Sequence record: PQ451753.1
Direction: 5' to 3' (one strand)
Length of the DNA stretch: 64,000 bases
The notes beneath the pieces were generated by a model that saw only the letters and a list, made by a program, of their open reading frames with translations, had not been told where the DNA came from and made no database searches. Each line of letters starts with the position of its first letter. Position 1 is the first letter of the stretch. A program made the translations under genes and the position numbers. Positions 5,919 through 63,953 of the stretch are shown piece after piece.

Positions 5919-5956
5919 GTGTCTGTACGTTTTGTGTACAGTAAAAAATTTTACAG

Positions 5957-7556: not shown

Positions 7557-9083
7557 TTACATGTCATCAAAGCCAAACAGATCGTCTGTTTCGCCTGCTA
7601 AGGCACCTGCGTTAACGGACTTAAGACTTAGGTCAACATCTAAATCATAGTCCCACGGAAGGATGCCTGTGTCGTTAAATGGCAATACACGGTAACGGTG
7701 TGCCATTGGTGTATCTACTAGAGTACGGTGTTTGCCACGTTGAACTTCCAAGAATGATTTCTCACCCATTTCAGTAATACCAAAGTAAAGCTCGCCATCT
7801 GCTTCATTATCCACTGTTGTACAACCATCGTAGAATCCTTTGCCCGGTAGGTTACGTACATACTTAGCAGGGTCAATAGCTTTAAGCTCTTTTGCTTTAG
7901 GTGATAACTGGTGTGGTGCAAGTACCGCACACTTACGTGGAGAAGTGATGTTACGAACAATACGGTAAAGCTCACGAATGTCAGAACCAGTTGCACCCGT
8001 ACCTAAGCCATTACGGTTAATTGTGCCAAGGTAGTCAGGTCGCAGAACAACAACATGGTAGCCTAACGATTCGTAGTAAGCAAAACGTTCACGTAACATA
8101 GCAGGAGTAAAGTCTGAGTTGATGTGTCGTTCAAACTTATATGTCCAACCACGTTCAGCAAGTTTCTGACAAACATATTTAGTTGCTGTCTTAGGATCGA
8201 TATCTTTAACGTTAGCAGGTTTCTTTTCGAAGTGGTCATGGATAGCTTTATATGCAATCGGCATGTTTACTTCTAGTTCGTTCTCAAACGACAAGTCAAG
8301 CATCAGAGGCTTCTTACCCTCAGGTACAAACATGTCAGGATCGTTGAACAAACCAAGACTTAAGAATGTCATTAATGAGAACAACGTTTTAGCATTGTGT
8401 GGAAGTGCAGGCATAAGCCATAGTTCACCCGGAACAATACCATCGTTCACACCCATCATGCGGTTGATACCTTTCCAACCAGTCTTAAGCGTAGCACCCG
8501 CTAATTGCTTCTTGGTGTTCTCAAAGATGTTCTCCATTTCATCTGGAGTGTCAGTACCAACAGATGCAACTAGTGTGGAACTTTTACCGTCAAGAGAGTT
8601 ACGTGTAACTCGCGCTAACTCGTCTGATAATTTGGCAGCAATGTCTTTAAGGTTTGCATCGCCATCGTGGTTGATACTATAGGAGGCTGTAGATATGAGC
8701 TTTCTTAGCTCTGAGCCGTTAATATAATGTTGCAAATGTGAGATGTTCGAAGAGATAGCATTCTTGATTTCATTATCATTTTCATACTTAACGTCGAACG
8801 CCTCTTTGACACTTTCGTAGAAATGTGTGTCTAGTGAGCAATACACGCGTATCTTTTGTAAGACAGTGTGATGGTCAAATTCTAGGTCGCCATTTGCCAA
8901 ATCAATAACAAGAGTCTTAACTCCAGTTATCGCAGCGTGGCCGTCCCCATCTGAAACGAAGTCAGGTGTGCGGATGTGTGTTGCTGTTTTCTTGATTAGG
9001 TTAGCGTAACTACCTTGCTCTCCAAGTTTCTTTTCAAGGAGTAACAAAGTAAGGCAGTTAACTAGTGCGATTTTCTCTTCCAT
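7557..9083 (-). CDS. dnaB: Replicative DnaB-like helicase (phiKZ gp118-like)
   Basis: KTGWKGIN, Walker A variant ALPHNAKT, SFEN catalytic Glu, Walker B DYLG, HQLS, RGKHR arginine finger; divergent from capsid operon as in phiKZ. Confidence 0.9.
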   Translation of the reverse strand: MEEKIALVNCLTLLLLEKKLGEQGSYANLIKKTATHIRTPDFVSDGDGHAAITGVKTLVIDLANGDLEFDHHTVLQKIRVYCSLDTHFYESVKEAFDVKYENDNEIKNAISSNISHLQHYINGSELRKLISTASYSINHDGDANLKDIAAKLSDELARVTRNSLDGKSSTLVASVGTDTPDEMENIFENTKKQLAGATLKTGWKGINRMMGVNDGIVPGELWLMPALPHNAKTLFSLMTFLSLGLFNDPDMFVPEGKKPLMLDLSFENELEVNMPIAYKAIHDHFEKKPANVKDIDPKTATKYVCQKLAERGWTYKFERHINSDFTPAMLRERFAYYESLGYHVVVLRPDYLGTINRNGLGTGATGSDIRELYRIVRNITSPRKCAVLAPHQLSPKAKELKAIDPAKYVRNLPGKGFYDGCTTVDNEADGELYFGITEMGEKSFLEVQRGKHRTLVDTPMAHRYRVLPFNDTGILPWDYDLDVDLSLKSVNAGALAGETDDLFGFDDM

Positions 9084-42141: not shown

Positions 42142-43122
42142 ATGATTCTATTCAAATCACCAAATCCACTTGACGACATCGCTACCATTATCCGCAACGC
42201 AAACCCGGAGACAGCTTCGGGTATCAACGGTAACAACATTGCCATTGATAACGTAAAAGCCATCAATCCTGAAGAGAACGATGGTTATAACACTGAATGT
42301 GAAGTGCGAATGGTGGGTATCGATACGGCAGTTGGTCTGATGCGTGTACGTTTTAATCGTATCACGTTATCTGAAATCATGCCTGAGTCATCTGGTACAA
42401 AAGTACGTGTTGAGATTCCAACGAAGCTGAATAAGTACATGGCGTACCCTGACTTCGCTGACCGCATGAGTAAGGCATTTGGCACCATGCTACAGGTTGA
42501 AGGTATTTACAAAGACTTTACTAACACCAACTCGGTTGCAGTAAGTAAAGGTAAAACCGCAGCAGCAAGTATTGCAGTTAACCCTGAATCGCTACGTTAC
42601 ACACCAGAGACATTCTCTTTTGAAGTGTTCGGTCTGGGTATCGCATTAAGCATTGTAGTGACTACACCGGGTTGTGTGCCGTTCCGCGATAAGAACGACA
42701 ATCCTAAGTATGAGCATGCTTACTGGGATGACATTCCATATATTGATGCTGAAGCTAAGCGATCTGCTATCATGTCACTTGGCGCGTTAGATTTCACGTC
42801 AGTATGGGGTACCGACCCAACCAACGTAATCGTCGCAGGTGATAGCGAAGCGGGTGAGCGTACTTGGAAGTTTACACCGGATGCATTTGAGAAGATTAAC
42901 TTAATCTTGTCAACCAACGGACTTCCACCACTGCCACGTCCAGACTTCTCAAGTTGGGGTCGTAACGGTACAAATGCTGCGCAAACACCAAACTGGGATG
43001 TGACTAACTATCACGTCTATATCAGTTACAATTACTTGGATTACGATTACAAAGAGATTGCTAACCTCCACCCGGAGCATGCATTCCATCGTGACAATCT
43101 AATCCTACCATACCGTACTTAA
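42142..43122 (+). CDS. Tail-fibre-like paralogue, variable tip
   Basis: YNT, RFNRITL, SLRYTP, DFTSVWG, GLPPLP; close paralogue of 43134. Confidence 0.65.
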   Translation: MILFKSPNPLDDIATIIRNANPETASGINGNNIAIDNVKAINPEENDGYNTECEVRMVGIDTAVGLMRVRFNRITLSEIMPESSGTKVRVEIPTKLNKYMAYPDFADRMSKAFGTMLQVEGIYKDFTNTNSVAVSKGKTAAASIAVNPESLRYTPETFSFEVFGLGIALSIVVTTPGCVPFRDKNDNPKYEHAYWDDIPYIDAEAKRSAIMSLGALDFTSVWGTDPTNVIVAGDSEAGERTWKFTPDAFEKINLILSTNGLPPLPRPDFSSWGRNGTNAAQTPNWDVTNYHVYISYNYLDYDYKEIANLHPEHAFHRDNLILPYRT

Positions 43123-43133
43123 GGAGGTTCGCT

Positions 43134-44150
43134 ATGTTGTTCTTTAAAAATGCGGACCCTCTAGAGGAGATCGCAGGTATTATCCGTGACGCTAACCCTG
43201 TGCTAGCTGACAGAATCAATAAAGACAATGTCATTATTGATAAAATTGAAGTGATTAAGCCAGAAGATAATGACGGTTTTAACACACAAGGTATGGTTCG
43301 TCTGTTGGGTGATCTTAACGACGTTGTTGGTGTGGTTACCATCCGTTGGAATCGATTAAACCTACGTAACATGATTCCTTGGAACATGCTGCATGTAGAA
43401 GCACCTTCAGAAAAAGGTTATGTTCGTTTGAACAACCTTGAGAATGTGTTCTCTAAAGGTTTGGGTACTAAGATGGAATCAAGTGGTCGTTACAAAGACT
43501 ACAACTATCCTAGTGCGCGCGCGCAAGCAAAAGGTTCTACGTTAGAGTACCGTGTACGTCCATTAGCTGAATCACTGCGTTACACTCCGGATGAGTTCTC
43601 ATTTAAGATTTACTGTCTGGGTAGTGCGTTAGACTTTGCAATCACGGATGTGGCCTGTCTACCATTTTACCAAGATGATGGTCGTCTGAAAATCACTCAC
43701 CCACAAAAAGGTTACTGGGACCCGACACCACGCATGCCTGGCGACACGTGGAAAGATGCAGCAGTTACTTTAGGTAACATCGACTTTACGTCGGTATGGG
43801 GTGAAGACCCTAGAACTGTTATCATTGAACACGGTGAGGAAGGTAAACCACGTTACAAGTTTGAAGCAGTAGCATTTACTAAGATGAATGCTTTGTTAGC
43901 AGCTTACGGTCTACCGCCGTTACCTAACCCGTACTTTGATGGTTATGATTACCGTTATGCGCATTGGCGTGACCGCGGTTACCGCTACTTCGCCACACCA
44001 CGCCCTGATGTGTTAACACACTCATTACGTATTCAACGTAGTAAAGTTGACTGGGATTACGAAACAATCTCTGGATTAGTGTATCCATACGCTCACGGTT
44101 ACTGGGCATACACCGAAGAGAACTGGTACTTCTGTTACTCAATCAAATAA
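43134..44150 (+). CDS. Tail-fibre-like paralogue, variable tip
   Basis: FNT, RWNRLNL, SLRYTP, DFTSVWG, GLPPLP; aromatic-rich C-terminus. Confidence 0.65.
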   Translation: MLFFKNADPLEEIAGIIRDANPVLADRINKDNVIIDKIEVIKPEDNDGFNTQGMVRLLGDLNDVVGVVTIRWNRLNLRNMIPWNMLHVEAPSEKGYVRLNNLENVFSKGLGTKMESSGRYKDYNYPSARAQAKGSTLEYRVRPLAESLRYTPDEFSFKIYCLGSALDFAITDVACLPFYQDDGRLKITHPQKGYWDPTPRMPGDTWKDAAVTLGNIDFTSVWGEDPRTVIIEHGEEGKPRYKFEAVAFTKMNALLAAYGLPPLPNPYFDGYDYRYAHWRDRGYRYFATPRPDVLTHSLRIQRSKVDWDYETISGLVYPYAHGYWAYTEENWYFCYSIK

Positions 44151-48740: not shown

Positions 48741-49520
48741 ATGCAATTCTTTACTCTTGGTTTAAAAATCCCATCGGGCGAACGCTCAGTTGAAATCAAA
48801 ACACAACTTACCTGCGATTCATTAGGGGTTGTGATTACTGAAGACATGGTCAAAGACTACGACCTAGAGAAGCGACACGAACTGTATGCTAACCTAATCA
48901 GTAGTTTAGCACATCTATACCATTCTGCGGGTGTGATGAACAACACGCTTGTAGAGCAACTACAGTCCATTCTAGACACGATTAAAGAAGCGGGCGCACC
49001 ACTGTTTCCAGAGAACGAAGGTCTAAGTAATGAATGGGAAGCATACTACGCATCAAGTGATGATAAACTAGGTATTGACTTCTTCATTAATGAAGTTGAT
49101 GAACACGGTGTTCCAAAAGATGCTGACTTACCTGACGGTTACTTAGTAGCACGATACTCCATTGATGACTTTGATATGGTTCCGGTGGCAGTTGAACTTA
49201 AGAAGTACATGCATCTTAATGATCGTGCCAAAGCATACGGTCAACTGTTTGACTTACTTCGCGAACATTCTCCTGAAAAAGAAGAGCGTGATGCATGGTT
49301 CAAACAACTGGAACGCATCTTCCAGAACGATGAACATCGAATCGTTAAGAACACTTACTGGTCTCGTCACTTTAAGAGTGGTGAGCATAGTGTAGAAGTA
49401 ACGTTCCGTCCACTTCATGACCTAGCCGACCTTTGTGAATTTGAAGGCGTGTGTGGTCTAAACATAATGGCGAATGATGAAAAGTCATTCCTACGTGTAG
49501 AGGAGTTACCGGATGCATGA
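48741..49520 (+). CDS. Hypothetical protein
   Basis: 259 aa, AAGGA RBS. Confidence 0.6.
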   Translation: MQFFTLGLKIPSGERSVEIKTQLTCDSLGVVITEDMVKDYDLEKRHELYANLISSLAHLYHSAGVMNNTLVEQLQSILDTIKEAGAPLFPENEGLSNEWEAYYASSDDKLGIDFFINEVDEHGVPKDADLPDGYLVARYSIDDFDMVPVAVELKKYMHLNDRAKAYGQLFDLLREHSPEKEERDAWFKQLERIFQNDEHRIVKNTYWSRHFKSGEHSVEVTFRPLHDLADLCEFEGVCGLNIMANDEKSFLRVEELPDA

Positions 49521-50334
49521 AACACCTAAAGTAACCGAACTAGGTATTACACACGTAACTGAATCAAAACCTAACATCCGTTTGTTGATAGCGCAAACAT
49601 TTGCCAATGCCGCACATCTGGCGATCGACCACCGTCGTAAATACACAGGTGAGCCGTACATCACACACCCTGCGGACGTAGTAAGTATTCTAGAGCGTCA
49701 TGGTATTATCGATACAGTGACGTTAGAAGCAGCGTGGCTACACGATGTGGTTGAAGATACTAAGATTACCGAAGATGTTATCTTAACGCTGTTTGGTATT
49801 GACACACATTACGTAGTTAAAACGGTTACGATGGAAGAACATCCTGCTGAAGTTGACCGCGCAGCACGTATGTCATTAGAGCGTGCACGTTGGAGAGCAG
49901 GCGACCACCGTGTTAAGAACCTGAAGTGTGCGGACTTAATCAGTAACGGTCGCTCTATCGTTGAACACGATCCAACCTTTGCTATCATCTTTATGAATGA
50001 AGCACGTCTAGCATTATCTGACTTACTGGGTGCTAAACCGTCACTTCATGCTGAACTTAAGAAGATGGTCGATGACTACTTCGATAACATGTTGGCCGAA
50101 CGCATTGGTGCTAAGTATTATCGTACTAAGATTATCAATGATACGGCTGGTGTGTATATGGGTGCAAAAGCTAAAGGTTCGCATTTACGTATCCGTATTC
50201 GTAAGCCGTGGGATAAGACCACCTCTCAATTAGGTGACCTATTCCCTAGCGATACACCGATTACTCTAACTCCAGAGTGTAAGGTGTATATCGGTGAAAC
50301 CTACCATCCTGAACTAAACGTGGAGCTCTGTTAA
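49513..50334 (+). CDS. RelA/SpoT (Mesh1-like) HD-domain hydrolase with C-terminal extension
   Basis: AH....RRKYTGEPYITHP, AAWLHDVVEDT, LKCADLISN. Confidence 0.85.
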   Translation: MHETPKVTELGITHVTESKPNIRLLIAQTFANAAHLAIDHRRKYTGEPYITHPADVVSILERHGIIDTVTLEAAWLHDVVEDTKITEDVILTLFGIDTHYVVKTVTMEEHPAEVDRAARMSLERARWRAGDHRVKNLKCADLISNGRSIVEHDPTFAIIFMNEARLALSDLLGAKPSLHAELKKMVDDYFDNMLAERIGAKYYRTKIINDTAGVYMGAKAKGSHLRIRIRKPWDKTTSQLGDLFPSDTPITLTPECKVYIGETYHPELNVELC

Positions 50335-50994: not shown

Positions 50995-51285
50995 ATGTAC
51001 AATCTAAATGGTGAGTTTGCTAGAATTACGGAAGTTCGCACTAAAACCTTTTCTGAAGAAGACGGTAGTGCAGTAGTGCGCGTGATGGCGAGAGTCGGTA
51101 AATACAAACTACTGCTGTTATGGGATTCCACAGTCAGCGTGAAAGACATCTTGAAACATTTCAAAGAAGGTAAAGAAGTGCTGATTGATAAAGGGAAACC
51201 TTGTGATGAAGACGGCAACATCTTACCACACTACCATTGGCGTGTGGTTAAGACATTGTCGGATGTAAGCGGGGCTAATAAGTGA
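50995..51285 (+). CDS. Hypothetical protein
   Basis: 96 aa, AAGGAGG RBS. Confidence 0.6.
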   Translation: MYNLNGEFARITEVRTKTFSEEDGSAVVRVMARVGKYKLLLLWDSTVSVKDILKHFKEGKEVLIDKGKPCDEDGNILPHYHWRVVKTLSDVSGANK

Positions 51286-52181
51286 AAGAACTAGGTAATT
51301 TAGTTAAGATATGTCAGGACGACTTTGATGATGGGGTTCAAGAGCTGGTACTGAAGTTCAGCAGTGGTCACACCATCACACAGAGACGTGTATGGCCCGA
51401 TGTGAAGTATCGTGACAATGATGGTAACGATAGTCTACATGAAGTGGTTTACTACTCTGACGAGTTTAGAGAGCTTGAGAAAGCAAACCCGGATGCAGCG
51501 TTTGCACTTATCTGTAAGTGTAGTCGTTTGATAGAAGGGCCTGACTTAAAACCACAATCTGTAGCGGTGGAAGACTTTGTTGGTGGTCAAGTAGAGATTC
51601 GTGATCAACGTGTCTTACATGAACACTGGTTCCAAGTAATTCAGATGAGCTGTCGCCATTCCCTATGGGAAGGCGGTTGGTCTGAATACAAAGACCATAC
51701 ATTTGTGAAGGGTCGCGAAGGCGTTGCGTGCGTACTCTACGATAAAGACAGTGATACGATTGTCCTTATTGAAGAGTTCCGTATTGGTGCCGTCTATGAA
51801 GACAGTCCGTGGATGGTGGGGATACCTACAGGCGGGTTGGAAGAAGGCGAAGACCCAATGGATGGCGCACGTCGTGAATGTGAAGAAGAGGCAGGGTTAA
51901 AACCTTACTACATGGAACACATGTTGACTTACAAACAGTCACCGGGTTTCACTACACATACACAGCATTTATTCTACGGGTTAGTGGATGCAAGTCAAGC
52001 ACCAACTAAAGTTCAAGGTCTGGACTCAGAGGGTGAAGACATTCGTGTTGAGGTAATCCCTGCGCATGAAGTCCGCTATATGTTAGGTAAGAACGAGTTT
52101 AAGAATGGTACAGCCATTACTGCACTCCAACAGTTCCTACTGTTCCATTACGAATCAGCACGCAGTGTTGTAGAAGCTTAA
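51282..52181 (+). CDS. Nudix hydrolase, ADP-ribose pyrophosphatase (NudF)-like, with extra N-terminal domain
   Basis: Nudix box GGLEEGEDPMDGARRECEEEAG; VLIEEFRIGA, SPGF, EGEDI motifs. Confidence 0.88.
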   Translation: MKELGNLVKICQDDFDDGVQELVLKFSSGHTITQRRVWPDVKYRDNDGNDSLHEVVYYSDEFRELEKANPDAAFALICKCSRLIEGPDLKPQSVAVEDFVGGQVEIRDQRVLHEHWFQVIQMSCRHSLWEGGWSEYKDHTFVKGREGVACVLYDKDSDTIVLIEEFRIGAVYEDSPWMVGIPTGGLEEGEDPMDGARRECEEEAGLKPYYMEHMLTYKQSPGFTTHTQHLFYGLVDASQAPTKVQGLDSEGEDIRVEVIPAHEVRYMLGKNEFKNGTAITALQQFLLFHYESARSVVEA

Positions 52182-53393: not shown

Positions 53394-54029
53394 ATGGCTA
53401 AGAAACAAAACAAGAAAGCTGCACGTAAGAAGAAGCCACAAAACCCAACAATGCGTCGCGAAGATTACGGGATTACCGTGGCATGTGAAAAGGTACTAAA
53501 CGAAATGTACCTATCGTTCTCTTCTGTACATTCGGCTATCCAACGTCATGGAATGGACCAACTGAACCGTCTAGTAAAGAACACCGAAAGGAAGAAAGTA
53601 GGTGGTTTCTTTACTAAAGGTAAAGACGATTTAACCATAGCTCGTGAAGCACTTATGGGTGACTTGTCAGAGACTGTACGTAAATGGAATTACTGGGTCG
53701 GTGTGTTCACTGACGACGGTGATGAAATTGCATGTGAGATTATGGCGGGTTACATTGAAGATGTTGTCATGGGCGACCTCACTAACATTATGCCTGAACT
53801 TGTGGCAGAAGTGTTGCGTGATGAGGTAGACGGTAAACCAATCGTTAATGCAGATAACATGAAAGGATGGGCATGGATTGCAACCCCATCTAATCAATTA
53901 GACTTTGCGGGTGATGATGAATTCACTACTCGTACCTTTATCGAGAATTTCGATATCTTAAACCAAGACCTTCGCGCTGAGACAGAAAGTCTCCACCGCG
54001 TTAAATACATTGAAAAGCAGGCAGCGTAA
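53394..54029 (+). CDS. Hypothetical protein, paralogue of 63429
   Basis: YWVGVF, GWAWIATP motifs. Confidence 0.6.
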   Translation: MAKKQNKKAARKKKPQNPTMRREDYGITVACEKVLNEMYLSFSSVHSAIQRHGMDQLNRLVKNTERKKVGGFFTKGKDDLTIAREALMGDLSETVRKWNYWVGVFTDDGDEIACEIMAGYIEDVVMGDLTNIMPELVAEVLRDEVDGKPIVNADNMKGWAWIATPSNQLDFAGDDEFTTRTFIENFDILNQDLRAETESLHRVKYIEKQAA

Positions 54030-56342: not shown

Positions 56343-56702
56343 GTGTCGAATGAAGTTAAAGTACTTGAATTCAATAATTACAAAGAAAATGGTCACGATG
56401 AATGCGATGCGTCAGAGCATCTTGGCGTACTTGTAATTGAAGAAGTTTTAAAGCATCTCATGTTAGGAGTTGTTGACAGCTACGATATGAAAACTACCAT
56501 GCGATTATTGGAAGTTAAGTTATCAGAGTTACGTGCTAAGCTTGGCGGTGATCGTATTGTCCTTAAGCTTCAATATGATGATGCCGTATTTACTGCGACA
56601 AATAGTAAACTTGGACCATTGTGCGATATAACGCCTATTAAAGATGGTTATAACGCCATTATCGTCAATAACAATATGACTATTATTAACCTACAACGTT
56701 AA
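56343..56702 (+). CDS. Hypothetical protein
   Basis: 119 aa, AGGAG RBS. Confidence 0.55.
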   Translation: MSNEVKVLEFNNYKENGHDECDASEHLGVLVIEEVLKHLMLGVVDSYDMKTTMRLLEVKLSELRAKLGGDRIVLKLQYDDAVFTATNSKLGPLCDITPIKDGYNAIIVNNNMTIINLQR

Positions 56703-56815
56703 TGTCAGAAGTGACAATAAAATACTTATAACGTATATAGATGGTTTAGCCCGCACCAAAAACATAAGAGATGTTGAAGCGGGTTCTGTAAACACATATA
56801 TAAGGAAAGCATACC

Positions 56816-57844
56816 ATGTCTAAACTTACACAAATGACAAAAGAAGATCTACTTAACCTACGTAAAGATGCTACAACTGGCGTAACGATTAAGAATATAA
56901 AGTTGATGAACGATCAGCCAATCGCTACTGTGTATAACGATGTTGTTAAGGCAATTAGCGATATGTTGTTAGAATCCATGAACAACAAGTTAACTGACGA
57001 GCAGTACGTTAACGTTATGCAGTACGTATTAAAACAAATGAGTAGAATGTGTGACGATGCAAGGTTCGAAAGAAGTACGGTAAAGGAATTCATTAAGTAC
57101 GTGTTCTTTGTATACAACATCATTTCACGTACCACCTACCACAATTCAGCATGTCGCGATTTCTGTCGCTCCCATGGTTTCCCTTACTACACGATTAAAC
57201 AAAACCGTGTATTACAAGACATGTTCAGTAATTCATACGAGGCAATGGTCTACAAGATTGCAAATACGGACTGCGATAAATACCCACACGTTTTATATTT
57301 ATCCAGTGCTACATTTTACACATCTAAAGGCTTAGGTAGTATTAATGCCTATACATTCCTCGGTAAGCTGACGGTCAGAGATACTGAATCACTGCGTGAC
57401 GCTGTTGAACTTACACTTAATGAAGGCAGTATAAAAGAGATGATTGGTTATGGTTATCAAATGTCAGATACTGAGTATAAATCGCTACCTAGACGTGTGT
57501 TTAGTAATGAAGTTCGTAAGTACCGAAGTGCCGCAGTACTTATTCATAGACTTGGTGAGCGTGGTAAGATGTCTACTGAATACGTAGATGTTGACGGTCT
57601 GGTTGACCTAATAGCGTTTCTCAATAAATCTGGTACTTTCGATCCAACTGATCGTTGCAGCCGTCAACTTAGAGAGTTATACTTATCCTCCCATGACCAT
57701 CTAATTGAAAAGCGACCAGAACTAGATAAAGGTTTAGACCGTGTCGTATTCTACAATGATTGGTTAAACCACCTTACTAAACACAAGTTGTATGAAAAGC
57801 GTAATCTGCGTGAAGATTTCATTCAGTTCGTTGACAACTACTAA
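56816..57844 (+). CDS. Hypothetical protein
   Basis: 342 aa, AAGGA RBS. Confidence 0.6.
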   Translation: MSKLTQMTKEDLLNLRKDATTGVTIKNIKLMNDQPIATVYNDVVKAISDMLLESMNNKLTDEQYVNVMQYVLKQMSRMCDDARFERSTVKEFIKYVFFVYNIISRTTYHNSACRDFCRSHGFPYYTIKQNRVLQDMFSNSYEAMVYKIANTDCDKYPHVLYLSSATFYTSKGLGSINAYTFLGKLTVRDTESLRDAVELTLNEGSIKEMIGYGYQMSDTEYKSLPRRVFSNEVRKYRSAAVLIHRLGERGKMSTEYVDVDGLVDLIAFLNKSGTFDPTDRCSRQLRELYLSSHDHLIEKRPELDKGLDRVVFYNDWLNHLTKHKLYEKRNLREDFIQFVDNY

Positions 57845-57849
57845 TAACC

Positions 57850-57880
57850 CGGAGGGACGTTAAGTCCCTCCTTATTTTTT
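57850..57880 (+). terminator. Intrinsic terminator
   Basis: GGAGGGAC/GTCCCTCC stem plus T tract. Confidence 0.75.
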
Positions 57881-57894
57881 ATTTGGAGCAAATC

Positions 57895-59199
57895 ATGAAA
57901 CTACTTAAAGCAACATTCAATCGTCTAAACCTTACTCAGTCGCCTGTACGTCATCCGATGACTGCTGACTTTAACGCGGAAGTATTCCAATGTCTAAGTG
58001 AAATGCCGTTACGTGAACTTGTTCACGATAGTCATGGTGATATTAGCGAGCTTGTATCTCAGCTTGAGACCGATGGTGTCTTTACATACCGTTATGGTAC
58101 AATGGAGCCTGCCGCGATTCCAGGTATTGAATTGGGTGAGGTGCATACGTTCGAATTCCTCGTCGAGTTAGAGTCACGTGCGGTATATACACAACGTAAC
58201 ACGCTGATGGTAGTACGTGGTTATGTTGAAGGGTTACCTAACTCGTCTGAAGCGAAATACCACATTGTGTCAACGATGTCATACCGTAAGGATGCTAACG
58301 TTACTGACGTGTATATTGTTAACAACACTCTATTCTGCTTAGAAGAGTCGGTTGACGCGCGAACTCTGCGTACTCGTGACGGTGTGGCGACATACGAGAC
58401 TCAGCTTGATACTATTGACCTCGACGATACGGTAGTGGTTGATATGCGTGCCTCGTTCCTCGCAGGTATGCAGATGTTCGACAATATGGAAGTAAGTCGC
58501 AGTTATTACTTAGCGCGTATGGTAAATGCAATCATTCAGTGTGAAATCAATAATCCAGCCGACGACATCTTCGGGTTAGAAGCCAGACACGGTATGGTGG
58601 CTGACCAACTGAACTTCCCTAACATGTTGTTCAACCCATTCGTTAACGAACTACGTAATCTAGGCGATAAGATGCACCGCACTATGTGTCTTGATGATAC
58701 AACGTTACGTCAGTTATTCGGCGACGCAGTCGAAGCGGAATCTAAAGACCTTATTAAGATTCGTCCGGTCGCAAGTGCTTGGGATAATTCATTCGAGTCT
58801 CTGGCGGCTTACACCATCATGCAATACCTTCATGGTCATGTTGCAAGTTTAGGTGTTCAAACCTTAGAGCTGGAGATTGATGAAGATGGACCAGTTCAGC
58901 CTAAGTACACTGCCCTTAAGGATTTGGACAAAGGTGTGCACACTTATGCAGACATTACTAATGTTGCAGAAAGTATTCACGAGCAGTTCGATTGTCAGGG
59001 ACATCAAGTAACCGCATTTATCGACTTTAACGTAAATGGCGTCTCTACTGTAGAGGTGTCTGTAGATGGTGGCGAGGAACGTATCTTTGAATACGCAAGC
59101 TTTGCATCTAGTTACTGCAACCCATTGGTAACTCATGACGATAGTTTGCAAGGCGAGCTAGCTGCTATGTATAAAACAATTCGTGACGTAATCGCGTAA
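57895..59199 (+). CDS. Probable divergent copy of a Chimalliviridae core-block protein (possibly PicA/Imp1, phiKZ gp69 family)
   Basis: Motif order KLLKA.F..., IPG....F.FLVE...VRGY, YLARM, W....ESLAA, VSVDG....YASF..YCNPLVT resembles that family from memory only. Confidence 0.35.
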   Translation: MKLLKATFNRLNLTQSPVRHPMTADFNAEVFQCLSEMPLRELVHDSHGDISELVSQLETDGVFTYRYGTMEPAAIPGIELGEVHTFEFLVELESRAVYTQRNTLMVVRGYVEGLPNSSEAKYHIVSTMSYRKDANVTDVYIVNNTLFCLEESVDARTLRTRDGVATYETQLDTIDLDDTVVVDMRASFLAGMQMFDNMEVSRSYYLARMVNAIIQCEINNPADDIFGLEARHGMVADQLNFPNMLFNPFVNELRNLGDKMHRTMCLDDTTLRQLFGDAVEAESKDLIKIRPVASAWDNSFESLAAYTIMQYLHGHVASLGVQTLELEIDEDGPVQPKYTALKDLDKGVHTYADITNVAESIHEQFDCQGHQVTAFIDFNVNGVSTVEVSVDGGEERIFEYASFASSYCNPLVTHDDSLQGELAAMYKTIRDVIA

Positions 59200-59216
59200 T
59201 AACGGAGATAATAAGA

Positions 59217-59888
59217 ATGACAACTGTACTATTTACTAAAGACCATGTTTACTGCGATACGCAAGTTACCCGCTGCAATGACGTAGCTAGCTTAGACTGC
59301 ATCAAGTTCTTCCCACTGTCAGATGGGTCTATCGCATATGGTGCAGGTTCCCTTAGCGAGATAGTTGCCTCTGTAGCTATGTATGAAGGTGTCGATAGAA
59401 AATTACCTATCGAGCAATATATTGGTGGTGGTGGCACCACTCTTGTTATTGTTAAGCCTGACGGGTTTATTGAACGCTTTAAACCAAAACGTGAATCTAA
59501 ACGTACGAGCGACGGTATGGGTGGTTCAAAGCAACGCCACCCTATGTTGTTCTGGAAAGGATCAGATCCTTTCGTTTGTATCGGGAGTGGTAGGCCACAC
59601 GTGGATGCGCATTACACTTATGTTAACCACAACCCAAAACAAGCAATGATGAATGCCGCTAAGCGCGACACTGGAACAGGCGACCGCATGTTCAAGCTAC
59701 CACGTCGTTGGAAGGAAGGCGAATCCGTTGATATCGAGTTTTACGATGGATTTACACGTGCAGGAAAATACAGAAAACCAATCACTATCAACTTGAAATT
59801 CCCTAAAGATGCTAACTGGGTTTATGATGTACTAACTGGTCAACGTGACCTTTACCCTATCAATCTTAAAGAAATAATCGGAGCGTAA
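59217..59888 (+). CDS. Ntn-hydrolase, HslV/proteasome beta-like threonine protease
   Basis: N-terminal MTT nucleophile, D-T-Q-V-T, IGSG, A...D..TG motifs. Confidence 0.7.
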   Translation: MTTVLFTKDHVYCDTQVTRCNDVASLDCIKFFPLSDGSIAYGAGSLSEIVASVAMYEGVDRKLPIEQYIGGGGTTLVIVKPDGFIERFKPKRESKRTSDGMGGSKQRHPMLFWKGSDPFVCIGSGRPHVDAHYTYVNHNPKQAMMNAAKRDTGTGDRMFKLPRRWKEGESVDIEFYDGFTRAGKYRKPITINLKFPKDANWVYDVLTGQRDLYPINLKEIIGA

Positions 59889-59889
59889 T

Positions 59890-60729
59890 ATGTTTGACTA
59901 CCAACCAACTCAAATCAAAACGCCATGGAAGCAAATAAACGAGTTACTTAGTGGTGATGGATTTAATCCAATTGGTCTTTGGTTACTTCCTGTGATTAAC
60001 CATGAGCAGGTGTATGACTTCTATGCACATCTGATTGCATCACAAGCACACTTACTGGATGTATCAGAGCATCCTCGTCGTAACGATGACTTGAAATATA
60101 CTATCTGTTATATGGATGCGGCATCGCAATATGCAGCCGCTATGGATGCGAATGTGGCACAGTACATATCTGAGCGTACTGGTAAACCTGTGGGGGGTTT
60201 ACCCGTTGATGTCATTAACTACAATGAAGAAGTGTTTGGTGAACGTGACATTCGTTTCATTAACTGGCGATTGTCTCGCTCAAACTCGCTAGATGTTGCC
60301 ATCCGTGGTATTGGCGATGGGTTGTTAAACGGTGGGTGCGATATGCGTATCTGTATCGTCGACCGTGTTGGTTTAGAAGACTATCACACTGAGACAGTTA
60401 TTCGAATGTTACGTGAAATACGTCACTGGGCAGCTCAGAATCAAGTACTGGTATTAATGAGTGCGCCTATTGACCACCGTTACTTCCGCTATGAGACGGA
60501 ATTAGATAAACCGTTCATTGACCGCTTTGATGATAAACGTATGGATAAACTTTACCTACATAAGGGTATGTCGTTACAAGCAGACGGTGAGTTACTGATT
60601 GGTCACAATGACGAAGAGCAAGAGTTAGTAATTCGTCGTGGTAAGTCGCGCGGTGACTCTCGCCCCTATGGTGAAGAGGTACGTTTTGATTCGTTAGTAG
60701 GAGAGTTTCCTGAATGGGATGTAATGTAG
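59890..60729 (+). CDS. Degenerate paralogue of the DnaB ATPase domain (no N-domain, Walker A lost)
   Basis: KTPWKQIN, LWLLP, IVDRVG, ADGELLIG, IRRGKSR align with dnaB at 7557-9083. Confidence 0.8.
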   Translation: MFDYQPTQIKTPWKQINELLSGDGFNPIGLWLLPVINHEQVYDFYAHLIASQAHLLDVSEHPRRNDDLKYTICYMDAASQYAAAMDANVAQYISERTGKPVGGLPVDVINYNEEVFGERDIRFINWRLSRSNSLDVAIRGIGDGLLNGGCDMRICIVDRVGLEDYHTETVIRMLREIRHWAAQNQVLVLMSAPIDHRYFRYETELDKPFIDRFDDKRMDKLYLHKGMSLQADGELLIGHNDEEQELVIRRGKSRGDSRPYGEEVRFDSLVGEFPEWDVM

Positions 60730-60911
60730 ATAAGTTTGAACTGATACTTGGCATCGAGCGTAAGCCTGAAGACAGTACTATGTTGCATGTGCAAGTGGCA
60801 AAGCAACGTACAAAAGGTCCAAGGGTTAAAATCGTGAACGGTCACGCAATCGTGGTAAGAGATGAAGGAGTGTATGATGAGTCGAGAGATTCTTCTGGAA
60901 GCGGTGCATGA
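60714..60911 (+). CDS. Small protein resembling DnaB/RecA-fold C-terminal strands
   Basis: VDKFELILGIER...LHVQVAKQRTKGP resembles DAD.II.L.R...AELIIAKQRNGP. Confidence 0.4.
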   Translation: MGCNVDKFELILGIERKPEDSTMLHVQVAKQRTKGPRVKIVNGHAIVVRDEGVYDESRDSSGSGA

Positions 60912-61395
60912 CTACCAAGGTAATTCAACAGGCGTGTACTTTAACGGATGTGTGTTTGACTTTGACCAAAAGCGCATGCAGGGTCTAATGGGGAAATTGG
61001 AATACTTTAACCAACATAGTGTTTCGATACAGTTCTGTGAGAGGTATCTGCGTGTCGGGGTAACTGCACACATGGCGGTTCCGTTAGACTGGCCAATTGC
61101 TGCACCAGTTTATTGGCTAGACGCAGGTAAGCACGTCAGTATTGTTGAAAATGCGGGTGCTAGTATACGTCACTCTAAACATGTTGAGAATGGATACGAC
61201 TTACTCATTGGCTTTATTCATGTACTTAGCTTTGACGGTAGGGAACTTATCAAAGCATCATCACGTGATGAAGATACGGATGATCCTATTATAAATCTTA
61301 GTAAATACACACACCAGTTATATGGCTTACTGGTTGAATATTTTAGTGGGCAAAAAATAAAGAATAAGGAATCTGAAGATGAATCCAGCAATTAA
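60862..61395 (+). CDS. Hypothetical protein
   Basis: <=177 aa; start probably MMSRE. Confidence 0.55.
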   Translation: MKECMMSREILLEAVHDYQGNSTGVYFNGCVFDFDQKRMQGLMGKLEYFNQHSVSIQFCERYLRVGVTAHMAVPLDWPIAAPVYWLDAGKHVSIVENAGASIRHSKHVENGYDLLIGFIHVLSFDGRELIKASSRDEDTDDPIINLSKYTHQLYGLLVEYFSGQKIKNKESEDESSN

Positions 61396-61885
61396 TAAAG
61401 CGTCTAAACGCATAGAGTTACCAGAAGACTTTAAACAGTCGTTAGCATCTATGCCACATATCCGAGTTATTGGTCGTGGTAATAGCGGTCGCAGCTTACT
61501 GTCGCACGCTATCGCAGATTGGTTGATTGCAGGCCATGGTTTCGTGAACAACGTGTATATTGAAGACACTATGGGTAAAGAAGCATATGCCATGTTTAAC
61601 GAATCAAATAATTACGACTTCGTATTGTTTGACAGTAACATGTTGCGCAACTTCGACTACAACAAAACAAAACGCTCAGTATGTTGCGAGACGCTATCGG
61701 TTGGCGTAAACACTGTGAACTGGCCTGCCACAGTAGCTGAGTTTGAAACACTATTGGCAGTTAAACTGGTACCGGGTTCAGTGTTCGTGTTTAACGATCA
61801 TCATAACTCAGAGATTCATGTCTGGTATCGTGGCTGTGAGCAGGGGCGTTCACACTTTACTTTCAAGAATCCGTTCGTAGCATAA
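61379..61885 (+). CDS. Protein with degenerate P-loop
   Basis: HIRVIGRGNSGRS (Lys replaced by Arg). Confidence 0.45.
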   Translation: MNPAINKASKRIELPEDFKQSLASMPHIRVIGRGNSGRSLLSHAIADWLIAGHGFVNNVYIEDTMGKEAYAMFNESNNYDFVLFDSNMLRNFDYNKTKRSVCCETLSVGVNTVNWPATVAEFETLLAVKLVPGSVFVFNDHHNSEIHVWYRGCEQGRSHFTFKNPFVA

Positions 61886-61931
61886 CAACATAAGGGGTAG
61901 TTCGCTACCCCCTCTTTAATTGGGAGATAAC

Positions 61932-63399: not shown

Positions 63400-63428
63400 A
63401 CGCCCTCCTATTGGGAGATAGTAGTACC

Positions 63429-63953
63429 ATGAGTAAAGGTTTCACTAAGAAGCAAGTAGAGCAAGCAAAGAAAACTGCATTAAACAACATCATCTTTTAT
63501 GGGTCGTCTGCGGTACGCGGCGTTACCTTTGAAGGTTTTGACGTAATGGAACGTTTATTACGTCCTAAGAAATACGAGCAAGCAGTAGAAGAACTTAAAC
63601 ACGAGTTACGTACTGAGTATCGCCCTTATATGTTCTGGGTAGCAGTGTTCCGTGAGATAGATGATACGATTGAAATTGATACGTATCAGATTATCCATAA
63701 CGAGCTTACGGTACCTGAGATTGATTTGTGGCTAAACGACTACATCACTCAGTGTATCCATGAAAAGAGTCCTGAGACATGTCAGGGTTACGGTTGGGTT
63801 GGTACGCCGTGTATGTACTTCGACTTTGATGCAGAAGAAGAGAACCTCATCAAACGTTTTGAAGGTCAAGGTATCTACGACCAAGAGAAACGCCAATCTA
63901 TCATCCACCAATATACAGCAGAACAAATTGCTAAGATGAAAGGAAACTTGTAA
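63429..63953 (+). CDS. Hypothetical protein, paralogue of 53394
   Basis: FWVAVF, GYGWVGTP motifs. Confidence 0.6.
   Translation: MSKGFTKKQVEQAKKTALNNIIFYGSSAVRGVTFEGFDVMERLLRPKKYEQAVEELKHELRTEYRPYMFWVAVFREIDDTIEIDTYQIIHNELTVPEIDLWLNDYITQCIHEKSPETCQGYGWVGTPCMYFDFDAEEENLIKRFEGQGIYDQEKRQSIIHQYTAEQIAKMKGNL

Follow-up and report, generated by a model that had tools for sequence, protein, structure and literature searches.

No essential determinant of entry into the phage nucleus is known other than the protein Imp1/PicA, represented by gp69 of phage phiKZ, gp63 of PhiPA3 and gp125 of 201phi2-1. Imp1 has been described as an essential import licence with multiple interfaces (preprint 10.1101/2024.03.27.586873; review PMC12908238); in phiKZ, the residues G88, R90, I226, H300 and R306 change the choice of cargo when they are mutated, and dominant imp1 missense alleles are known (10.1101/2024.03.27.586873). 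Also relevant here are the DnaB-like replicative helicases of the chimalliviruses (phrog_3213), which include phiKZ gp118 and RAY gp315, and the orphan HslV genes that have been reported, in the absence of HslU, in another jumbo phage (PMC7823757). In this work we describe four consecutive genes, g1 to g4, that are related to these proteins and lie within a stretch of 64,000 nucleotides (the window), corresponding to bases 1–64000 of the genome of Vibrio phage pVp-JHP1101 (PQ451753.1; 230,423 bp; host V. parahaemolyticus).

Phage pVp-JHP1101 is a chimallivirus, i.e., a nucleus-forming Vibrio jumbo phage; its genes include a nuclear shell protein and split RNA polymerases, and in the phage collection only Vibrio phage pVa-21 is closely related to it. 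The four genes are annotated in the record as hypothetical proteins 077 to 080. Their components belong to known families, and in the literature searched we found no description of such an arrangement, in which a hotspot harbours a second, hypervariable Imp1/PicA copy next to a helicase motor paralogue that has been disabled, nor of any Imp1/PicA paralogue.

The Imp1/PicA-related gene g1

The first gene, g1 (gene 077; 57895–59199, + strand), encodes a protein of 434 amino acids that belongs to the phiKZ gp69 family, phrog_3141, to which it was matched with an E-value of 1.7e-30 over residues 5–437, i.e., most of the length of the protein. The same family takes in phiKZ gp69/Imp1 (E 2.7e-179) and another gene of pVp-JHP1101, gene 237 (E 1.3e-109), which is the sole relative of g1 among the 990 open reading frames (ORFs) of the whole genome; no other ORF of the window resembles it. 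The comparison of g1 and gene 237 by hhalign gave a probability of 97.7%, with an E-value of 1.4e-12 over 346 columns and approx. 24% identity, and BLASTP detected two colinear high-scoring segment pairs (E 3e-7 and 4e-7). Both proteins share a central block, VDTRSSF..G.Q, and a C-terminal block, G(V/I)(S/T)..E(V/I)S(V/I)DG...SFA....P.VT.D. A profile built with g1 and its five relatives (A2) showed a weak match to phiKZ gp69, and a tblastn search with phiKZ gp69 led to positions 200353–201462 of the pVp-JHP1101 genome, i.e., to gene 237, and not to g1.

Gene 237 (522 amino acids; 200122–201690) is flanked by genes of phrog_3209 (gp68-like) and phrog_3520 (gp70-like), and it is this gene that holds the conserved position near chimallin (in the order gp67-gp68-gp69-gp70), within the canonical block at 190–210 kb formed by chimallin (gene 228), RNA polymerase beta, SbcD and the gp66/67/68/69/70-like genes, of which the gp67-like one is gene 235; g1 is found approx. 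142 kb away. These profile and pairwise comparisons confirm the assignment of g1 as a divergent Imp1/PicA paralogue, gene 237 by chimallin being the true orthologue, and they bear out the original prediction that g1 is a divergent copy of a core nucleus-block protein. Among the diverse g1 alleles, conservation is highest in the N-terminal 20 residues and between residues 300 and 420, and lowest in the segments 41–60 and 161–260.

The helicase motor paralogue g3 and the small gene g4

The third gene, g3 (gene 079; 59890–60729, + strand; 279 amino acids), is related to the RecA-like motor domain of the DnaB-like replicative helicase of the same phage (gene 009; phrog_3213; 7557–9083, − strand; Walker A sequence ALPHNAKT), whose gene adjoins the major capsid gene and is also located in the window. 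A search of the genome with the profile of the g3 family (A1) retrieved this helicase as the only match (E 1.2e-5, in two colinear segments), and the comparison by hhalign of the same profile with seven aligned DnaB-like helicases from chimalliviruses (A5) gave a probability of 94.2% and an E-value of 1.2e-7 over 226 columns. The aligned region extends from residue 8 to 257 of g3 and from residue 198 to 456 of the helicase, i.e., the entire motor domain, with approx. 20% identity between g3 and the helicases. The N-terminal domain and the linker helix are absent from g3, whose start corresponds approximately to helicase residue 198. A weak AlphaFold2 (AF2) model of g3 (predicted local distance difference test, pLDDT, of 52; six sequences) was used for the fold class only, and with it the top Foldseek matches were to KaiC, which belongs to the RecA/DnaB superfamily (E approx. 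1e-6); the model of g1, with a pLDDT of 42 from an alignment of six sequences, was left out.

The loss of the nucleotide-binding residues is evident in the alignment. The Walker-A lysine K232 is invariant in the seven helicases, and in the helicase of this phage K232 and T233 are aligned with V41 and Y42 of g3; none of the six members of the g3 family has Lys or Ser/Thr at the Walker-A columns. Likewise, the helicases all have H391 and Q392 in the H3 motif (PHQLS, carrying the Gln sensor), of which P193 alone is left in g3. On the other hand, g3 has retained the Walker-B Asp (D158, invariant in the family and aligned to D350 of the DYL motif), the ADGE motif (D232 and E234, both invariant in the family) and the arginine-finger motif, QRGKHR in the helicase, whose R249, G251, K252 and R254 are found in every member of the g3 family. 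With neither the N-terminal domain nor the Walker-A Lys/Thr nor H3, g3 cannot be a helicase. The alignments thus confirm that g3 is a paralogue of the helicase motor domain, predicted to be unable to bind ATP, as had been proposed when it was described as an ATPase-dead copy of the phage's own DnaB motor; the residues that it keeps are those predicted to act in trans on the neighbouring subunit.

Among the helicases, the best score of g3 was obtained with that of its own phage, and the signatures LWL(M/L)P and ADGE are common to that subclade; judging from the best bit score and these signatures only, g3 may have descended from the helicase lineage of its own phage. Some g3 alleles, i.e., P0001 (L011:743–1612) and that of L020 (8321–9190), carry an insertion of 10 residues after residue ~79, so that they have 289 instead of 279 amino acids.

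The gene that follows, g4 (gene 080; 60714–60911, + strand), encodes a basic mini-protein of 65 amino acids with the motif AK.R....VK[IV]VNGH. It is conserved in all relatives, where it has 57 to 65 residues, is also basic, and shows K30, R32, V38, K39 and V41 to H44 as invariant residues. At every locus the start of g4 overlaps the end of g3 by 16 nucleotides (nt), a constancy that points to co-translation, and g3 and g4 would probably form a complex. The original prediction considered g4 a short DnaB-C-like ORF; it is a real, conserved gene, and the likeness to the helicase turned out not to be significant, since hhalign comparisons of g4 with the helicase, with g3 and with the A5 alignment always recovered the RGKxR hairpin, but with E-values of 0.05–0.27 and a probability of approx. 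1%. The label is therefore an unproven lead. The g4 profile retrieved from PDB designed Kelch-repeat proteins only, which were judged to be a chance match of a beta-hairpin, and no PHROG match was obtained.

Allele exchange, linkage and the g2 cassette

A natural near-isogenic comparison was provided by L020, a whole phage-genome contig of 231,415 bp found in a bacterial assembly (GCA_054228985.1, contig JBSWZW010000002.1), which may represent a jumbo phage present there by carry-over or contamination. The genes flanking the locus are 98–100% identical between the window and L020, with a synonymous divergence (dS) of 0.04–0.08, in contrast with g1, which shows 58% amino-acid identity and a saturated dS of approx. 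2.6. For g3 the dS is 0.90, with 88–91% identity, and for gene 075 it is 0.77, whereas gene 076 and g2 are missing from L020. The combination of near-identical flanks with a saturated dS in g1 indicates that old alleles have been exchanged between backbones, and not that the locus evolves fast in place. Therefore, this locus is an allele-swapping recombination hotspot in which whole g1 alleles are exchanged between otherwise near-identical genomes.

The distribution of the four genes shows that they are not inherited together. All of them are present in the window and in pVa-21; in L021, g1 and g2 are followed by a partial g3, within which the contig ends, and g4 is not covered. L020 has g1, g3 and g4 without g2, as do L004, L005 and L008, and conversely L010 has g2, g3 and g4 without g1, the homologue of gene 074 being followed directly by g2. 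L012 to L016, which are unrelated marine phage contigs, have only g2 (46–48% identity). The only constant pair is g3 and g4, found together in seven of seven contexts, each time with the 16-nt overlap. From these data, g2 is a cassette that moves independently of the other genes and that, in certain strains only, is inserted precisely at the junction of g1 and g3; the locus consists of three separately inherited units: g1, g3 together with g4, and g2. The idea that the four genes work as one system is not supported by this comparison.

The rates of substitution, estimated by the method of Nei and Gojobori as the ratio of nonsynonymous to synonymous changes (dN/dS; for g3 and g4, from the closest pairs), were 0.13–0.16 for g1, approx. 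0.05 for g2 and 0.05–0.08 for g3; for g4, a short and overlapping gene, the values were 0.26–0.43. The copies are uninterrupted, and conservation extends to relatives with identities as low as 36–48%; g1 and g3 are the only intragenomic paralogues of Imp1/PicA and of the DnaB-like helicase. Intact frames, purifying selection and conservation together imply that the copies are functional derivatives rather than decaying duplicates; g1 to g4 are intact, working genes under purifying selection, in line with the suggestion that degenerate yet uninterrupted copies of core machinery have a function. The variable presence of these genes among strains and the loss of the catalytic motifs of g3 could also be expected from duplicated genes that drift towards loss; nevertheless, frames that stay open across relatives down to 36–41% identity with many invariant residues, dN/dS values of 0.05–0.16 for g1 to g3, and a g3/g4 overlap kept at all loci make functionless leftovers extremely improbable, and the selection data refute this explanation unless expression is absent.

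The families of g1 and g3 are small. The search of 5.8 billion proteins gave four matches to g3, and three representatives were found among 1.8 billion clusters; for g1, five matches were obtained in the search for relatives. A tblastn search with g1, g2 and g3 against 50,697 phage records found pVp-JHP1101 and pVa-21 only, neither g3 nor the g1 alignment gave any match in scans of IMG/VR, and sequence searches of NCBIfam, PADLOC and PDB with all four proteins gave no useful match.

The mobile gene g2 (gene 078; 59217–59888, + strand) encodes 223 amino acids and matches phrog_1040, annotated as 'peptidase HslV family', with an E-value of 4.5e-31. Six sequences, down to 45% identity, share the invariant residues M1-T2-T3, D14, K30, G42-A43-G44, G123-S124-G125 and D151; by inspection, g2 would have residues equivalent to T1, D17, K33 and S124 of HslV, so that the conserved residues fit a putative N-terminal-Thr hydrolase. 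The HslV/proteasome-like character that had been predicted for g2 is thus supported by the family match and by the conserved M-T-T, D14, K30, GAG and GSG. In the direct comparisons, hhalign with E. coli HslV gave a probability of 1.9%, phmmer detected no match to it, and there was no NCBIfam match and no significant PDB match. An HslU-like gene was not detectable in the pVp-JHP1101 genome. A candidate considered from the literature was gp116 of Erwinia phage RAY, assigned to the 'HslVU family' and located in the nucleus; it is an HslU-like AAA+ protein (phrog_4339), unrelated to g2. The two genes that follow it in RAY (L033, 86352–89163), gp117 and gp118, encode 179 amino acids each and do not belong to phrog_1040.

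It had also been suggested, by analogy with HslU-HslV, that g3, as a pseudo-ATPase, with g4, could be an adaptor that feeds substrates to a protease ring formed by g2. In favour of this are the N-terminal Thr and the phrog_1040 match of g2, and the separation of g2 and g3 by 1 nt wherever g2 is present. Both linkage and fold are contrary to it: g3 and g4 occur without g2 in L004, L005, L008 and L020, homologues of g2 occur without g3 and g4 in L012–L016, g3 is RecA/DnaB-like and without a P-loop instead of an AAA+ unfoldase, and a phage HslV without HslU, the situation found here, is already known (PMC7823757). We consider this explanation very improbable, and the linkage analysis has in this way removed an attractive but wrong reading, that of a phage HslUV-like machine.

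Regarding the arrangement of the locus, g1 to g4 open a coupled run that continues with g5 and g6 (genes 081 and 082; 60877–61885, + strand), two overlapping genes without paralogues and with no function assigned; g5 is missing in pVa-21 and L011. Gaps of 17 nt (g1/g2) and 1 nt (g2/g3) are followed by overlaps of 16 nt (g3/g4), 35 nt (g4/g5) and 17 nt (g5/g6). The run lies between two terminator-like hairpins on the + strand, one of 8 pairs (6 G-C) followed by a T-run at 57851–57871, 23 nt 5' of g1 and kept in L020, and the other at 61894–61911, after g6; the gene structure and the coupled run between terminators hold as first proposed. The left strain-variable part of the hotspot is formed by genes 075 (119 amino acids) and 076 (342 amino acids), at 56343–57844 (+ strand). 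Gene 076 (56816–57844), without a family match, is a strain-specific insertion that ends just before the terminator 5' of g1 and is missing in L020, L021 and pVa-21; gene 075 is missing in pVa-21 and divergent in L020. Two weakly related paralogues, at 53394–54029 and 63411–63953 (phmmer E 9.4e-5), bracket the variable region, and the second is immediately followed, just past the end of the window, by a short Peptidase_S80-like gene with the annotation 'prohead core scaffolding protein'.

Other features of the window deserve mention. An intergenic motif, A[GA]ATATATATCAT(TC), recurs with 11 matches at up to 3 mismatches, versus 2.6 expected, and no shuffle gave 11; its sites on the + strand of the window are at 5955, 14995, 27919, 30736, 32291, 37966, 52777 and 62567, and it probably serves one of the RNA polymerases of the phage as a promoter. 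Two tandem paralogues (42142–43122 and 43134–44150) belong to phrog_36635 (E 1e-163 and 2e-160) and also match, though less strongly, a virion structural family. Near the genes for dihydrofolate reductase and thymidylate synthase there are a RelA/SpoT-type HD_4 gene, annotated as 'GTP pyrophosphokinase' (49513–50334), and a NUDIX 'ADP-ribose pyrophosphatase' gene (51282–52181), which may manipulate the alarmone or nucleotide pools of the host.

Possible roles and comparison with known systems

The explanation that we favour, which we hold as possible though short of probable, assigns separate roles to the three units. The product of g1 would be an auxiliary selectivity factor located at the nuclear shell. 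The fold and the docking of Imp1 would be maintained by its conserved N- and C-terminal core, and its variable central surface, which covers the positions of cargo choice in Imp1, would license or deny the passage of strain-specific cargo. The products of g3 and g4 would form a nucleotide-free stator or cap, docked on the DnaB-like helicase subunits by means of the interface preserved in the RecA domain, that modulates the assembly, the loading or the trafficking of the helicase ring, in a role that may resemble that of P-loop-dead delta-prime in clamp loaders or of Rad51 paralogues in recombinase filaments. The protein g2 would work apart from both.

In favour of the role proposed for g1, the residues G88, R90, I226, H300 and R306 of phiKZ Imp1 align to the variable g1 columns ~82, 84, 181, 245 and 251, an overlap that is only suggestive, given that it comes from an alignment with approx. 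24% identity. Several observations weigh against the proposal. Alleles of g1 and g3 do not change in lockstep (58% versus 88–91% identity in L020), and g3 and g4 persist without g1 in L010; as these alleles change separately, a tight g1-g3 complex is argued against. The g1 and g3 families are confined to one small clade, and hence are accessory and not part of the general machinery. In the tree of motor domains g3 is found on a long branch, placed with no particular helicase lineage. The AF2 models of g3 and g1 are poor, and no interface is readable in them. Lastly, no copy of the promoter-like motif AGATATATATCAT was found directly 5' of g1, so that the run from g1 to g6 may be read from further upstream.

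A different role for the same proteins would be competition between phages, in which g1 and g3-g4 are dominant-negative poisons that co-assemble with the Imp1 machinery and the helicase rings of co-infecting relatives; the proteins of the producer would be insensitive, and an arms race among close relatives would drive the turnover of alleles. The swapping of saturated-dS g1 alleles between backbones whose flanks differ by a dS of 0.04–0.08 is in accordance with this, as is the divergence of these genes: g1, g3 and g4 are the most diverged of the genes compared with L004, as are g3 and g4 in the comparison with L009 and L010, which lack g1, and in L009 g3 is 36% identical while the neighbouring genes are 71–92% identical. 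The design of g3, with interface and arginine-finger motifs but no ATP binding, is the one expected of a ring poison, and the dominant imp1 missense alleles of phiKZ are a precedent. Nevertheless, the helicases of pVp-JHP1101 and pVa-21 are at least 95% identical, so that a poison would hardly be able to tell self from rival, and purifying selection acts strongly on each line of alleles. We regard competition as rather unlikely; the allele-swap hotspot fits a conflict-type role, and is no proof of one.

A related explanation, also unlikely in our view, combines elements of both: the g1 locus would be a hypervariable import-selectivity cassette, with alleles kept by conflict that decide which proteins pass the shell, and g3-g4 would be a ring-capping regulator or poison. 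The partners in this conflict would be co-infecting relatives, or host proteins attempting to get into the phage nucleus. If this were true, the duplication and disabling of their own core machinery would be a way in which chimalliviruses evolve new weapons or controls.

Strain-variable hotspots with presence/absence cassettes are typical of counter-defence loci, and the four genes lie within such an accessory hotspot. From this, the copies could be anti-defence decoys, i.e., cytoplasmic look-alikes of the import factor and of the helicase that soak up host immune sensors, with alleles that track the defence repertoires; the loss of catalytic function in g3 together with the retention of its surface motifs would agree with such a role. 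We find it distinctly unlikely. With approx. 24% identity of g1 to Imp1 and approx. 20% of g3 to the helicases, both would be poor mimics at the level of sequence, and host sensors directed at Imp1 or at the helicases of chimalliviruses are not known to us. No PADLOC match was obtained, and since this library contains host defence-system proteins, the result excludes only known defence components.

For the auxiliary selectivity factor and the stator or cap that we favour, the locus offers material of general interest. The differences among the g1 alleles fall mainly at positions aligned with the cargo-selectivity residues, and these alleles have already been swapped between near-isogenic phages, so that this natural exchange is a ready-made experiment on import specificity. 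To our knowledge, and with no search aimed at it, no loader has been described for the replicative helicases of chimalliviruses, and a helicase subunit without a P-loop suggests a regulator or a loader-like partner for them.

Compared with the systems described so far, g2 is like the orphan HslV-like ORF1 and ORF116 of Salmonella phage pSal-SNUABM-04 (PMC7823757), in that it is assigned to the 'HslV family', has an N-terminal Thr and lacks an HslU partner; it differs from the orphan jumbo-phage HslV peptidases of phrog_1040 in its 223 amino acids with an insertion of approx. 40 residues. The g1 protein belongs to the same sequence family as Imp1/PicA of phiKZ, PhiPA3 and 201phi2-1; unlike them, it is encoded outside the conserved chimallin block, as a second copy, it is shorter than the product of gene 237 (434 versus 522 amino acids) and lacks its last ~60 residues, and in contrast with a core gene it is not universal and is swapped as whole divergent alleles between near-identical genomes.

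The chimallivirus DnaB-like helicases align with g3 over the full RecA-like motor domain, and share with it the signatures LKTGW/IKTPW..IN, LWL(M/L)P, ADGE and RGK.R; they differ from it in having the N-terminal domain and the linker, the Walker-A Lys/Thr and the PHQ residues of H3. Motor paralogues with a dead P-loop that serve as stator, cap or assembly mediator are exemplified by delta-prime of the clamp loader and by the Rad51 paralogues, such as Csm2-Psy3. Like these, g3 is a motor paralogue predicted not to bind nucleotide that has kept the fold and the trans-acting interface residues; unlike them, it is related only at the level of the P-loop NTPase/RecA-like fold class, and its interaction with the helicase is putative.

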